From contig NW_002060948.1 of the NCBI RefSeq assembly GCF_000150275.1, positions 4,166,759-4,230,758 of the forward strand: 64,000 bases of DNA. Direction: 5' to 3'. Position numbers and translations under genes: made by a program. The stretch's first letter is position 1. Each line of letters starts with the position of its first letter. The notes beneath the pieces are model-generated. The model saw nothing but the letters and a program-made list of their open reading frames with translations. It had not been told where the DNA came from and searched no databases. Positions 9,050 to 35,641 of the stretch are shown here, in pieces. The stretch is from Trichoplax adhaerens (Eukaryota; Animalia; Placozoa).

Positions 9050-9228
9050 ATTGTACAACCTACAGTATACTACTGTACTGTAGTACTGTGCTATTTTGCT
9101 ATGAAACAATACAGTACTGTACAGTACTGTACACTGTACGGATAGATGAAGTACTGTACAGTGTACAGTACAGTAGTCAAGTGTCCATGTTAATATTTAC
9201 TGTACAGTACTATACACTATACAGTATA
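9050..9228. repeat. (TACAG/CTGTA)n palindromic pentamer array upstream of LZIC
   Basis: Dense tacagtactgtacagtactgtac-type runs ending ~230 bp before the LZIC ATG. Confidence 0.85.
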
Positions 9229-9461
9229 ATCGACGTGACAATGCATAGGGCGTTAACAGCTCTTGTTTGAGCTACCTAGCTTGGCTTGCAGTTCGCAGCT
9301 TGCATGTTGCTGTAGAAGATCGCTTGGCTATCAGCTACGATAGTATAGATAATTCATCATCATAATAATAAAGAATTCAATTACATCAAGAATTCATAAT
9401 CTTTCAAGCGACTGTTAGGTCTTAATAGTTACAATATTTTGCATCTAGTGTTGCTGTAATC

Positions 9462-11689
9462 ATGGCGTCTCGAGGGAAAGCGGAAACAGAACAACTTAAA
9501 AAACGGCTAGAAGAGCAGCTAGATCGTTTAATGGCTCAACTATCTGATCTTGAGGAATGTCGGTATGCCAGAAGTTACGATCTCGTATATTAATTAATCG
9601 TACTGTAGGCGCGATTTCTATTTATTTTTAAAATTGGTGTTATACAAGTATGAGGACTGACACAAATAATTGATATAGGATATAATTGAATATTTCCAAC
9701 GCCGGCTCGTAATGATAATTAATCATACCGTACTATTGATGAGTATACTGTAATTACCAAAGTAAACTGTACACTATCCATGCAACTGTACTGTACAACA
9801 AATAATAATATGTTCGGTTTAAACTATTCCGGCTACTCGCTTTCTTTATCAATGAATTGTTATACAGTACTAGTAATGGAGACTTTGAACACTTGACAAT
9901 CTTTTCAACTATAGCTTGATATTGATTTTCGTGATTGGATATCGATAAAAGTGGACAGTACAGTATATCTACCAGTTCAGCTATCCATAAGATACTAAAG
10001 CATCCGCCTTTGCTGATGGAAGATCCTCTTTATCAGCCTGTCATTAATGCTTACCTTGCCGTATGTATAAAGTCATGGAGTACACATTACTGGAGATACT
10101 TGTTAAAGATATAGTACTGTACAGTACAGTAGAGTACTACAACTGTGTGGCTACCGTAGATTTAAGATACTATAACTGTAAACACAGGTTGCTATATCAG
10201 AATCCGATGTGCGTGATCATTTTACGAGAGGTATTGCTGCACTATGAAATCGAGTAAAACGTTTCTATCGTGCTTCTTATACGTGTATGTAATTGGTTTG
10301 AGATACACCATCGATCCGTATTTCCTACAGTTTTTAACGAAACCCGGATAATTTACCGCATTAAATTAATTTTACGCTGTATAGGATTGAATGCTGTAAA
10401 ATATTCAACCCACCCTCGTAATATTAAAACAGATAATTTACTGCACCAGATTAATTTGACGGTGTATAGGATTGAACGCTGCAAAGTATTCAATTCACCC
10501 TCGTGATATCTAATCTATATTGATATTGTTTCCATCCTATATTACTACATTGTACAGTACTGTACAGCGATAAATTGTCCTCGTTAAATTGTCTTAGACC
10601 GAGTTTTTGATTGGATATGTTGATGCGTACGGCGCAGTGTGTTATAGTATTACATTAATCTAGCTCGTCTGTAGACGCTAATGATATTGGTATTTGTGAT
10701 CACTTGCAGGGAAGATTTAGATGAAGATGAGTATGAAGTGACCAAGAAGGAAACGTATGAACAATTAAGCGAATTTAATGATTCACTAAAGCGAATTGCC
10801 GGTGGCAATATGACATTAGTTGATGATTTAAATGGAATGCAATTGGTAAATAATTATATTTAATGAACGAGTATACAGCGCATGATATGGTATCAGCCAT
10901 TGCATACGATGACAAGCTTTACCGAAATAATAATGATAATGTAAATGCATTGCATTTAATTTAATCTTAGGCTATACAAGCTGCAATTAGTGAAGCCTTT
11001 AAGACACCTGAAGTGATACGACTTTTTGCAAAGAAACAGCCTGGACAGCTAAGGAATAGACTTGCTGAGGTTGATTTAGTACCAGCTTTCTAAACATTTT
11101 ATACGTAGCTTACTTAATGGACCTGTTTAGGCGATCTCTGCTTGAATAGTAATAGTAGTACTGAATTTATACACGTAATAATAATAGATAGAACGCGATG
11201 GCAAAATTGGGAAATTGGCTGTCGATGTGTACAAACAGCAGAAGCTTGAGATACTGACAGCTTTAAAAAAATTAGGAGATAAGGTAACTATGGATATGGT
11301 GTAATTTCATATATTCCTATGTCGAATAATGCAGTGCAAAACTTGCTTTTGGGCTTATCGCTAAAAGTCTACGTATATACGTCTATTGTGCATTGGTAGC
11401 TATCCCCAGAAGAAAGTGCTTTCCTTGCAGATAATGCGACGGCGTCATTAAATCAATTTGAGCAAGTTTCTGGAGATATTGGTTTGTGCCTCTTTTTTAT
11501 TCATAATTTATAAATATAATCAGTATGATAGGCTTAATAGCAGTAGGCAATCGATGCTTACAATGTCTATGTACGATCCATAAATGACCGGGTGATGGAA
11601 TCGTGTAGTAACATTTCTAAAATTGATTAGGAACAACTGAAAATGTATTAGCGGTTGCTGGTTCGCAAGTTAGTGAAGCTCGTAAGTAG
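9462..11689 (+). CDS. LZIC: LZIC (leucine zipper and CTNNBIP1/ICAT domain-containing protein), 190 aa, 6 exons
   Basis: Exons 9462-9562, 10710-10845, 10971-11069, 11188-11283, 11400-11481, 11631-11689; all GT-AG, total 573 nt. Translation [112 protein letters not shown]... is the characteristic LZIC sequence. Confidence 0.96.
10347..10509. repeat. Diverged ~85-bp tandem duplication in LZIC intron 1
   Basis: Unit gataatttac..attaattt.acg.tgtataggattgaa.gctg.aaa.tattcaa..caccctcgt.atat starts at 10347 and again at 10432. Confidence 0.85.
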
Positions 11690-33581: not shown

Positions 33582-35288
33582 CTTTGTTACTTTCAGCATA
33601 GCTTAACGTACAAGGCACCTAGCCTAATTCTAATACGCATTAGTAGTAATGCAGCAGTTATCATTTTTTTATTTTACAGTTAATAAATTATTTAAAAATA
33701 GTCCTTTGATCGAAATAAATCATGAAATTGTCGCTATTCTAATTTTACTGATTTATTAATATAAATTTTTTCATGCGTGAGATAATCACCAAGTAATGTT
33801 TATTCGAAATGAGCGTTAATATTCTTTCAATTGCTAATTTCTTTGACTTTGATTTGTCTTTTAGCACGTGAAGTAGTCCTAGTCCTGCTATCATAGACAG
33901 ATGCAAGTATGCGTAATATTTCAGATTGAAATAGTTACAGTACACCATCAATCACCACAGCAAAAATGCTACGAGGTGTTAGATGGTGCTTATGGTACTA
34001 TACTATAGTATTCTGTAGTCTGTATTTTTGTCTGTTGACATATAAGCCTTAAAATTTCTCTTTGGCTTATATATTATATTCAATGATAGCCAGAAAGTTA
34101 TGGTATGCCATTATACATTGGCTGTTAGTGCAATAGTATATTTTACCGATTTATCAATATTAATGATCATTCAATAGCTTGCCAACAGATTTCGATACTG
34201 ATGATTTTCTTTAAATTATCTTGAAATAGTAATTTCAATTTTTTCTGTGTAATCGTAAATGTTACCGAATAATTCATTGATATGATGTTTAAGTAACATA
34301 CGTATTTGCAGTGACTGATTAAAAGCGCTGCTTTTCCGATTTTGGTTATTGATCCTTGATTTATTCTTTAGCACACCCGAATCTATCCAATATTTCTATA
34401 TAGTTGCCTTATAGACACCGTAAATACATTCCTAGTCCGTAAATTGCATCTTAAATTGATAACTATGTGATAGAGAAATTTGCATTAGGAAACGTATAAT
34501 GATTTAAGAAACAGCTTCAAATTTTGGAAGAGCACACCGATTGTTAATATTGAATACCCAAAACCTAAATACTACCAGTAGTAGTAGCATGTTATTGACG
34601 TATTTCGGTTAATTAACCAGTTCAGGTACTTGCATTCTGATGCAGTATACTGCACTAGTAGTACTGTTAAACATGGCCTTAATATTTAACGTGCATTACA
34701 TTAACTGACTCACGCACACCCAGCTGTGCATTGTCACTATGTATAAACTTAGTAAACTGCTCGGTGGAGATACTCGGTAGTCTTTATGTACAGTTCATGC
34801 GGTCGTTGGTTGACTCTTACCCCAAGTCCTAACTGCATACTATCGTCCAATTAAAATAAAAGAAATTAATAAGTAATTGAGTATTAACTTGGGAAATTTG
34901 ATCCTGGCAATCAGCCGAATACCTTGTAGAAAAGGTTCCGTATACAGATTTTAGTTATCTGGTCGACTATGCTTACTGTGTTGCCGTTCTTCAAAAATTG
35001 AGGATACCCGTTCCAGGATCTGGCTGGGCATGATTCACTTCAGTTGAAGCACCATCTGCGCATGCGGTTTCGGGCGAAGAAAAAGTAAAATTCCTCAGCT
35101 TGTGTCAGTATGGTTACTATGGTATACCAGCAGAAGTAGAGGCATGCCTCAAACTTTAGTCCATTATCATAGTAGTGGTAAGAAACAATTTTTTTCAGTC
35201 TATAGCAACATATTGTACATTCTACAGTATACAGTATCTTGAATTATGCGCTCTGTAACTGTACTGCATAAGTTAAATCAAGGCCAGA

Positions 35289-35641
35289 CTACAGTACAGT
35301 ACTGTACGGAGTACGGTAATGTGTTGTCTTGTACGGCCGTAAAGTCCCATGGACTACTTACAGTACTACATTAGTAGTTGTACAGTGTACAGTACATCTA
35401 CCATTGTGGTTGGTACTGTACACTGTACAGTACATATGACCAGTGAGTGAGACCACCTGCCTGACGAATCAACTTACAGGCCCGCTGCGGTCTGATTTTC
35501 GTACCATGATTACCAGTCCGATAATTCCAATTCCCTTATACAGTACTGTACTGTACAGTACAGTACTGTAGTGACTACAGTACTGTACAATAGTACTGTA
35601 CTGTACTGTACTGTACTGTACGTCCAGTACAGTACTGTACA
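35289..35641. repeat. (TACAG/CTGTA)n array upstream of the putative eIF5A first exon
   Basis: Two dense blocks (35289-35433, 35540-35641), e.g. tacagtactgtactgtacagtacagtactgta and tactgtactgtactgtactgtactgtac. Confidence 0.88.

Follow-up and report, generated by a model that had tools for sequence, protein, structure and literature searches.

Arrays of a phased 5-bp unit upstream of constitutive genes in Trichoplax adhaerens

Short promoter motifs and the known Trichoplax repeat

Drosophila DRE/BEAF-32 sites and vertebrate ZNF143 sites are short motifs found at constitutive promoters and are tied to promoter contacts. The ctenophore CTEP motif is another short motif of constitutive promoters with a tie to promoter contacts (PMC12221973). 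All three occur as one or a few sites and have known binding proteins, whereas the arrays of Trichoplax adhaerens consist of tens of phased copies per promoter, and their binder is putative. Vertebrate CpG islands resemble the arrays in being a sequence class which marks constitutive promoters by composition or repetition and not by one precisely placed site. Unlike CpG islands, the arrays are built from a defined 5-bp unit and are not linked to cytosine methylation, and they do not show the high G+C and CpG content of an island: their G+C content is 34-42%, and that of the window (the whole 64-kb stretch of DNA analysed here) is 34%. The genome contains a single DNA_methylase-domain locus, which fits an earlier premise that DNMT1 and DNMT3 are missing. 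The comparison with CpG islands is speculative and would be an analogy of role, not of common mechanism.

Abundant (ACAGT)n repeats upstream of T. adhaerens genes were described by Wang, Zhang, Meyer and Bao in 2010 (Biol Direct 5:18, PMC2871265). These repeats are found within 1 kb (54%) or 5 kb (85%) upstream of genes and are enriched at ribosomal-protein and translation genes; a role as a transcription-factor binding site was suggested. Among the rows listed in their gene table, at least 31 are for ribosomal proteins, at least 28 for the proteasome and at least 4 for coupled receptors; no trypsin row is among them. Kim et al. (2025; Nature 642:1097, PMC12221973) found a motif in T. adhaerens at loop anchors and at the housekeeping 'GP1' promoters of highly and broadly expressed genes, which were contrasted with cell-type-specific 'GP3' genes. 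The GP1 class has ATAC and H3K4me3 peaks, and promoter hubs and looping were seen by Micro-C. The loop-anchor motif is common to four placozoans; a distant genus of placozoans has a similar one. There are 2978 GP1 genes and 3557 loop anchors.

The arrays described below belong to this (ACAGT)n promoter repeat of Trichoplax; their existence, position and gene-class bias are already published. The loop-anchor motif is very probably the same GTACW unit, as judged from a k-mer test, the letters of the published motif being in a figure only. A literature search found no text linking these k-mers to placozoans.

Arrays and genes in the window

TACAGTA occurs 185 times on both strands of the window, compared with 15.5 +/- 4.6 expected from dinucleotide-preserving shuffles (maximum 31). 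Five clusters together hold 96 TACAGTA/TACTGTA matches in 1.7 kb. This bears out the original prediction, which placed dense arrays of a 5-nt unit, in both orientations, at five positions upstream of five housekeeping genes. The arrays have no assigned strand; the five genes are all on the + strand.

Array 1 (9061-9232) contains 13 TACAGTA/TACTGTA matches and 14 GTAC cores, and ends ~230 bp upstream of the first ATG of LZIC (9462). Array 2 (13663-13858; 15 matches) lies ~600 bp upstream of the ATG of a SPEN-like gene (14457). It is also directly beyond the 3' end of LZIC. Array 3 (23329-23841; 22 matches) is 200-400 bp upstream of the YBX ATG (24237). It is dense from 23329 to 23516 and looser up to 23841, and there is an outlier at 24030-24041. 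Array 4 (30282-30671) has 22 matches and 29 GTAC cores and lies ~270 bp upstream of the EFHD ATG (30944); TRF describes it as a period-10 repeat of 22.5 copies. Array 5 (35223-35645), with 24 matches and 31 GTAC cores, is ~2490 bp upstream of the eIF5A ATG (38133). The distance from array to first coding exon is therefore 0.2-2.5 kb across the five clusters, within the 1-5 kb upstream of gene starts that is typical of the repeat of Wang et al.

The identity of each gene was checked by an exon-by-exon search, exons being taken singly and not joined into a spliced model. LZIC has an ICAT domain (11188-11301), and the SPEN-like gene has RRM and SPOC exons downstream of array 2. The cold-shock exon of YBX (27971-28087) matches Y-box protein structures in the PDB. 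EFHD has EF-hand/AIF-1 domains and relatives named EFHD2, and eIF5A has IF5A_N and eIF-5a domains (38133-38678). These domain and structure matches uphold all five of the names given earlier. A scan of the window found no cluster upstream of the GPCR gene (3305-4348, minus strand), the three M13 peptidase genes (starts near 42593, 51711 and 57614) or the hydrolase ORF, and no array beyond the 3' end of eIF5A. Arrays are thus just upstream of 5/5 of the named genes and 0/5 of the others (Fisher p = 0.008), as had been predicted.

Transcription starts were predicted solely from GTAAGT splice donors that closely follow the EFHD and eIF5A arrays. One such donor ends a candidate non-coding EFHD exon at about 30690-30741, downstream of array 4; the other ends a candidate non-coding first exon at about 35650-35732, directly downstream of array 5, which probably belongs to eIF5A. 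These candidate exons begin within about 10-60 bp of the array ends. Together with the presence of CAGT within the unit on both strands, this proximity would suit a platform for dispersed initiation, in which the repeated CAGT/ACTG cores act as many weak initiators and give the broad bidirectional initiation typical of constitutive promoters. However, the candidate exons begin downstream of the arrays and not within them, and we consider such a platform extremely improbable.

Units are not confined to the arrays. Outside them, the block from 9 to 36.7 kb contains 2.58 matches/kb, compared with 0.55-0.78/kb elsewhere in the window and about 0.24/kb in shuffles. The motif scan found a minor cluster in the SPEN-like gene (15875-15973, no assigned strand) and other small clusters at 10115-10131, 10553-10564, 24661-24738 and 32152-32227; all of these fall in the 5' portions of the five genes that have arrays. 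Scattered units run on into 5' gene bodies and then thin out, as first noticed. The scatter of units through 5' introns is as compatible with mutation in open chromatin as with selection.

The unit, its abundance and its gene-class bias

The simplest description of the unit is (GTACW)n, in which GTAC cores follow one another at exactly 5 bp and the spacer is A or T. Among GTAC-GTAC spacings of up to 30 bp, 69 are exactly 5 bp; the spacer is T in 37 of these, A in 30, and G and C in one each, so that 67/69 are A/T. The window contains 25 runs of three cores and nine of four, consistent with the three or so tandem ACAGT/ACTGT copies, at least, that define the repeat of Wang et al., and TRF finds both period-5 and period-10 arrays. 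A 12-bp palindrome formed by the unit is found 17 times in the window, with ~4.4 expected from the genome average. In the whole genome there are 6758 four-core runs and none for a reversed control. Genomic 12-mers derived from the unit occur 7220, 6323 and 18630 times, and controls 8-21 times. By a rough estimate there are 2500-3800 arrays genome-wide, the same order as the counts of GP1 genes and loop anchors of Kim et al.

The orientation of the unit is nearly random. Genome-wide, neighbouring units meet at 18630 same-orientation and 13543 switched junctions, a switch rate of 42% where random orientation would give 50%; in a local sample, 28/64 junctions are switched. This is an addition to the published description of the repeat. 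Wang et al. counted only perfect head-to-tail repeats, and the 42% switching, the invariant GTAC core and the contrast with cell-type-specific genes are not noted there.

The mixing of two orientations makes the arrays strongly self-complementary. Stems of 16-30 bp are predicted, and the DNA folding energy of all five arrays is far below that of shuffles (z = -3.1, -5.7, -4.6, -4.6 and -7.0 for arrays 1 to 5). These values, and the strict 5-bp phase, would be expected of an element that acts through DNA structure independently of protein, if phased flexible steps or extruded cruciforms excluded nucleosomes or absorbed supercoiling at busy promoters. However, self-complementarity follows automatically from mixed orientations, and at the 58% of junctions which keep the same orientation the palindrome is not formed. 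A purely structural element of this type is improbable.

The arrays could also be a neutral by-product with no function of their own: microsatellite-like sequence, expanded by slippage and inverted by template switching at hairpins, in promoters that stay permanently open and transcribed in a largely clonal animal. Every locus has its own array length and content, the copies are degenerate, units thin with distance into 5' introns, and the strong hairpin potential could drive the template switching; all of this fits. A classical slippage microsatellite has homogeneous head-to-tail units, whereas here 42% of junctions are switched. A single pentamer makes up 78% of all pentanucleotide repeats (PMC2871265), and a motif like it is reported from a distant genus of placozoans (PMC12221973); neither is easily accommodated by a neutral process. 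The four core bases and the 5-bp phase are kept while the spacer is A or T, and units switch orientation; slippage of head-to-tail units does not by itself produce this pattern.

Gene-class bias was also assessed outside the window. In a family sample, the 1.5 kb preceding the first detected exon was searched for an array in proteasome and E2 genes on one side and GPCR and trypsin genes on the other. Arrays were found at 10/35 proteasome or E2 genes and 1/40 GPCR or trypsin genes (p = 0.002). By family, 7/13 proteasome and 3/22 E2 genes have one within this distance, both values being lower bounds because several arrays lie at the edge of the sampled stretch. Relative to the first detected exon, 10 arrays are upstream and two downstream. 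The top k-mers discriminating between the gene classes are all derived from the unit. Arrays are enriched at housekeeping promoters over cell-type-specific ones, as is the GP1 motif of Kim et al., both in the sample and in the window. If the arrays were neutral, expression level would have to be the sole source of this bias. The window and an independent genome sample both show the preference of promoter-proximal arrays for broadly expressed genes, and two papers agree with it (PMC2871265; PMC12221973). The original prediction that arrays mark every housekeeping promoter is too strong, given the proteasome and E2 values.

The inverted-repeat element and orthologous promoters

When units are masked, the five arrays have nothing in common except a MITE-like inverted-repeat element of ~380 bp. 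Copy A (8652-9030, + strand) ends 30 bp before array 1 and has a 20-nt terminal inverted repeat at 8667-8686 and 9009-9028. Copy B (22866-23262, + strand; genome match C1409:4189624-4189998) ends about 65 bp before array 3; the two copies are 73% identical. The genome has at least 40 confirmed and 212 candidate copies. Wang et al. called MITEs rare, whereas the family that adjoins arrays here has at least 212 candidate copies. The element adjoins 2/5 arrays in the window, and 13/20 examined copies adjoin arrays. A search of 262 kb from other loci, among them the ten arrays scored in the family sample, gave no copy. No clear target duplication is readable at the element. GGACTAC was considered as a second promoter motif and rejected; its seven window matches are scattered, and it is the outer end of the element's terminal repeat.

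A transposon origin is one of two readings offered by Kim et al. (PMC12221973), who found Mutator labels, assigned by the EDTA pipeline, at these promoters, with the motif inside the terminal repeats. The arrays would then be, or descend from, terminal inverted repeats of Mutator-type DNA transposons inserted into active promoters, and the frequent association of the ~380-bp element with arrays could be read in the same way. However, the terminal repeat of this element is unrelated to GTACW and its body is almost without units; several copies have an array on either flank, as though the element had divided one that was already there. The element is also missing from the other loci named above, and it is all that the masked arrays share. 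EDTA assigns Mutator labels from inverted-repeat and duplication structure, not from transposase, and inverted arrays could trigger them. A MULE transposon should have a transposase nearby, or terminal repeats with 9-11 bp target duplications, and neither was found for the arrays; only four MULE-transposase-domain matches are found in the genome, and none of the four has a unit within 1.5 kb. Only six MuDR fragments were found by Wang et al. (PMC2871265). Descent from Mutator is highly improbable. The data favour insertion of a different inverted-repeat element, the ~380-bp one, into pre-existing arrays; this adds to the published description of the repeat and bears on the published Mutator link.

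Orthologous promoters were compared for EFHD (contigs L102 and L101) and eIF5A (L099). In the distant placozoan contig L102, an array is present at the same place upstream of EFHD. Arrays are absent from the EFHD promoter of a closer relative (L101) and from the eIF5A promoter in L099. Contig L105 ends 26 bp before LZIC exon 1 and so contains no promoter. L098, L103 and L104, which have eIF5A or LZIC homologues, were judged not to be placozoan and left out; they show exon-level similarity only and background unit counts. Arrays thus appear, from sequence comparison, to have been gained or lost at orthologous promoters between placozoan lineages, which is a further addition to the published description. 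If the arrays have a function, it must be dispensable or replaceable, given their absence in L101 and L099. Such variable presence also fits a neutral by-product. Neutral slippage, the alternative that accompanied the original prediction, is weakened by the orientation switches and the A/T-only spacer and keeps the support of gain and loss at orthologous promoters; we consider a neutral by-product unlikely overall.

A putative landing pad at constitutive promoters

The reading we prefer, at a probability of roughly 0.55, is that the promoter-proximal (ACAGT)n arrays of T. adhaerens, found preferentially at broadly and highly expressed genes and at a few thousand promoters, are a putative multivalent landing pad. 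Each array would be bound by a putative factor which reads the palindromic WGTACW core in either orientation; both the identity of the motif and its protein reader are inferred. Binding would hold constitutive promoters open and allow them to gather in the promoter-promoter hubs that Micro-C shows. The transcription start, together with conventional core-promoter sites, would be found a short way downstream of the array. The existence, position, class bias and constrained bases of the arrays come from this analysis; accessibility, H3K4me3 and looping are taken from the literature. It should be noted that many housekeeping genes have no array within 1.5 kb, and that this and the array-free promoters of EFHD in L101 and eIF5A in L099 speak against a landing pad.

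A more specific form of the landing pad is tentative and rather doubtful. One placozoan-specific WGTACW-binding factor might both cluster constitutive promoters and tether integration of the ~380-bp element, which would land inside arrays because the same putative factor tethers it there. On this view the arrays would have given rise to the published 'Mutator' link and not the reverse, and the near-random orientation of the units would result from selection acting on core and phase alone.

It appears that placozoans use a phased short repeat to mark a few thousand constitutive promoters, a means undescribed in other animals, and the promoters so marked form 3D hubs without CTCF-type loops. The remaining value of the arrays is mechanistic: what reads them, and whether they are the cause of openness and looping or the result. 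A constrained core with a spacer free between A and T and in near-random orientation, the insertion of a dispersed element, and gain or loss between lineages sharpen this question and cast doubt on the published transposon origin.

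Arrays of GTAC cores and the genes beside them

The window has 185 occurrences of TACAGTA over the two strands, where shuffles have 15.5 +/- 4.6; 96 of the 185 matches fall in five clusters totalling 1.7 kb. These lie where the original prediction had placed palindromic TACAG/CTGTA arrays. Array 1 (9061-9232) ends ~230 bp upstream of the LZIC start codon at 9462, and array 2 (13663-13858) ~600 bp upstream of that of a SPEN-like gene at 14457. Array 3 (23329-23841) ends 200-400 bp upstream of the YBX ATG at 24237, array 4 (30282-30671) ~270 bp upstream of the EFHD ATG at 30944, and array 5 (35223-35645) ~2490 bp upstream of the eIF5A ATG at 38133. 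A simpler description of the arrays is GTAC cores precisely 5 bp apart: this exact spacing is found in 69 cases (next commonest spacing, n = 10), and the single base between such cores is T in 37, A in 30, and G and C in one each. Since the spacer is A or T, TACAG in both orientations amounts to mixed GTACA and GTACT units (GTACW). Scattered units continue beyond the arrays into the 5' parts of the five genes, at 2.58/kb compared with 0.55-0.78/kb in the rest of the window and ~0.24/kb in shuffles.

Gene identities were searched exon by exon, with no spliced models joined. All five predicted names are upheld by domain or structure matches, and all five genes are on the plus strand. LZIC has an ICAT domain at 11188-11301 (E = 7e-14) and an N-terminal exon from 9462; the SPEN-like gene has an RRM (E = 1.5e-12) and a weak SPOC match. 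The cold-shock exon of YBX resembles Y-box protein structures (E = 2.5e-9). EFHD carries EF-hand/AIF-1 domains, and its relatives are named EF-hand domain-containing protein D2; eIF5A matches IF5A_N (E = 1.4e-38) and eIF-5a (E = 1.9e-23). Directly after their arrays, EFHD and eIF5A each have a short sequence that terminates at a GTAAGT donor (~30690-30741 and ~35650-35732); these are candidate non-coding first exons.

As predicted, only isolated units, and no array, are found in the window upstream of the 7tm_1 GPCR (3305-4348, minus strand), the M13 peptidase genes and the hydrolase ORF. Array 1 adjoins LZIC and is 4.7 kb from the GPCR. There is no array 3' of eIF5A in the window, so the arrays are not 3'-end marks.

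Words containing ACGTG (CACGTG or ACGTGAC) occur at 9233, 13892, 23296, 24176 and 35662, ~10-60 bp from the array or candidate start region in four of the five cases; these could be E-box-type promoter sites of the conventional kind. A perfect-looking (AACGCCA)6 heptamer repeat (24087-24128) is found in what is presumably the YBX 5' leader. Two unrelated tandem duplications of ~2 copies each are located in an LZIC intron (10347-10509; period 85 bp) and between M13 genes (50602-50858; period 127 bp).

Promoter class and other placozoans

Pfam profiles were used to locate gene families in the same genome. Proteasome subunits and E2 ubiquitin-conjugating enzymes represented housekeeping genes; cell-type-specific genes were represented by rhodopsin-type GPCRs and trypsins. 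Scoring covered 1.5 kb upstream of the matched exon nearest the 5' end, an array being at least four 7-mers (TACAGTA/TACTGTA) in 200 bp. Ten of 35 housekeeping genes have an array, as does 1 of 40 specific genes (Fisher's exact p = 0.002); the housekeeping frequency of 29% is a lower bound because several arrays lie at the far edge of the scored stretch and the matched exon is in many cases not the first. Mean 7-mer counts per stretch are 5.8 and 1.2, respectively. The class bias is thus independently confirmed outside the window, but the claim that every housekeeping promoter has an array is not: they were found at 7/13 proteasome and 3/22 E2 genes, again as lower bounds. Within the housekeeping set, arrays occur ten times upstream and twice downstream of the first detected exon. 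In a blind k-mer contrast between the two sets only unit-derived words come to the top, among them GTACTGTA (108 housekeeping, 8 specific) and CAGTACTG (17 and 0). At G000:C1400:176889-179483, two divergent genes, for a proteasome subunit (minus) and an E2 enzyme (plus), are ~2.2 kb apart with arrays between them, likely a shared bidirectional promoter.

The arrays, their promoter position and their class bias are already known (PMC2871265, PMC12221973). Wang et al. found that 61.8% of Trichoplax microsatellites are pentanucleotides, of which ACAGT accounts for 78%; 54% of all ACAGT repeats are found in the 1 kb upstream of a gene, and 85% if the distance is extended to 5 kb. Genes near the repeat show enrichment for translation, chiefly ribosomal proteins, and for protein modification, and the repeat was proposed as a possible transcription-factor binding site (PMC2871265). 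Among the rows listed from their gene table, at least 31 are ribosomal proteins, at least 28 proteasome, at least four coupled receptors and none trypsin (PMC2871265). Kim et al. (2025) divide T. adhaerens genes into GP1 (2978 genes of housekeeping function, marked by ATAC and H3K4me3 peaks and by loops), GP2 (intermediate) and GP3 (cell-type specific), and describe a motif shared by loop anchors and GP1 promoters which is also present in orthologous promoters of three other placozoans (PMC12221973). The k-mer contrast shows that GTACW is the unit that any de novo motif search on promoters of this kind has to find. The published motif is given as letters in figures only; the k-mer contrast, together with counts of the same order of magnitude, makes it very probable that it is the GTACW unit.

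Three contigs from other sources were placed as placozoan by nucleotide identity and gene order. L099 (Logan SRR30664517), 76% identical over eIF5A and carrying an adjacent M13 gene, has no array in the 3.5 kb upstream of eIF5A. L101 (ENA ERZ23499115), with the YBX 3' end and EFHD exon 1 (80-88% identity), has only scattered units in its 1.5-kb spacer. L102 (Logan SRR30660616; EFHD exons, 81-85%) has six 7-mers in 45 bp at the contig edge, ~330 bp upstream of exon 1, and further units in the EFHD first intron. In the EFHD alignment the array is variable, while a block of ~35 bp just downstream of its position is conserved between L101 and L102, and an ETS-like ACTTCC word just upstream of the 5' exon donor is kept in three lineages (window 30700-30712, L102 ~195-205, L101 ~2618-2626). 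On these three data points, arrays turn over between lineages. In L099 the first M13 gene is upstream of eIF5A and divergent; in the window (38124-43319) it is downstream on the same strand, which points to a local inversion.

The comparison with CpG islands was the original prediction's own analogy. The likeness would be one of role only; array G+C is 34-42%. Placozoans are reported to lack DNMT1 and DNMT3. A single DNA_methylase (PF00145) match in the whole genome, weak and stop-interrupted (G000:C1414:5507031-5507318), fits this reported absence.

An inverted-repeat element and the proposed Mutator link

In the EDTA pipeline, structural candidates are sorted into DNA-transposon superfamilies on the basis of their inverted repeats and target duplications. 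This pipeline provided the repeat annotation of Kim et al., who tie their motif to Mutator terminal repeats (PMC12221973); inverted GTACW runs could have triggered such Mutator calls. Only four MULE-domain matches occur in the genome, with no unit inside 1.5 kb of any of them, and Wang et al. found only six MuDR fragments (PMC2871265). When units are masked, the only further sequence shared between any of the five array regions is one element. Mutator origin is therefore disfavoured, and it is quite unlikely that the arrays are transposon ends.

The element is ~380 bp long with ~20-nt terminal inverted repeats (AGAAGAAGACCTGGACTGA, outward to about CATGGACTACT); copies lie at 8652-9030 and 22866-23262. 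In the genome, at least 40 copies are confirmed and 212 are candidates, at 70-81% identity; MITEs are rare in this genome according to Wang et al. (PMC2871265). At least three 7-mers are present in a 200-bp flank of 13 of the 20 copies examined, several on both sides, and the element body has almost no units. No copy was found in 262 kb of other loci, among them the ten arrays scored in the gene families. Most simply, these results are read as insertion of the element into pre-existing arrays or their open chromatin; this is the second alternative of Kim et al. and differs from arrays derived from transposon ends.

A lone CCATGGACTACT word, equal to the outer end of the terminal repeat, lies within the eIF5A array (35345-35362), and words like it are also seen upstream of EFHD in L101. 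They may be remnants of element ends.

Unit orientation and mechanism

Counts were taken over the 105.6-Mb assembly of 1414 contigs, in which the window is G000:C1409:4166759-4230758. Four consecutive cores (GTACWGTACWGTACWGTAC) occur 6758 times (reversed control, 0), the orientation switches TACAGTACTGTA and TACTGTACAGTA 7220 and 6323 times (20 and 12), and the same-orientation word TACAGTACAGTA 18630 times on both strands (8 and 21). Rough extrapolation from the window's counts per array gives 2500-3800 arrays genome-wide. GTACW runs fill many of the shortest contigs (C100, C103, C112, C200, C207 and others, ~1 kb each), which suggests breaks in the original assembly at arrays and the loss of some promoters from the scaffolds.

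Orientation switches at 42% of neighbouring-unit junctions genome-wide (28/64 in a local sample); 50% is expected if random, and almost no switching in a head-to-tail slippage repeat. That the arrays are a neutral by-product of open chromatin is a less likely reading. A pure DNA-structure role is improbable. The arrays do have much stronger self-folding than shuffles (z = -3.1 to -7.0, with stems of 16-30 bp), but this cruciform potential is a product of mixed unit orientations, and 58% of junctions are not palindromic. An initiator platform is very improbable.

What is kept in the arrays is the core, the phase and the A/T spacer. A kept core, an A or T spacer, strict phase and free orientation would be expected from protein recognition of a palindromic WGTACW site, which a putative factor would bind in either orientation. 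The arrays would then be a multivalent binding platform for this factor; we favour this reading, at a probability of about 0.55, because of the constraint pattern and the published accessibility and looping of GP1 promoters. The arrays are real, correctly located and class-biased, yet already published; the details added here refine the question of their mechanism and the published transposon link.
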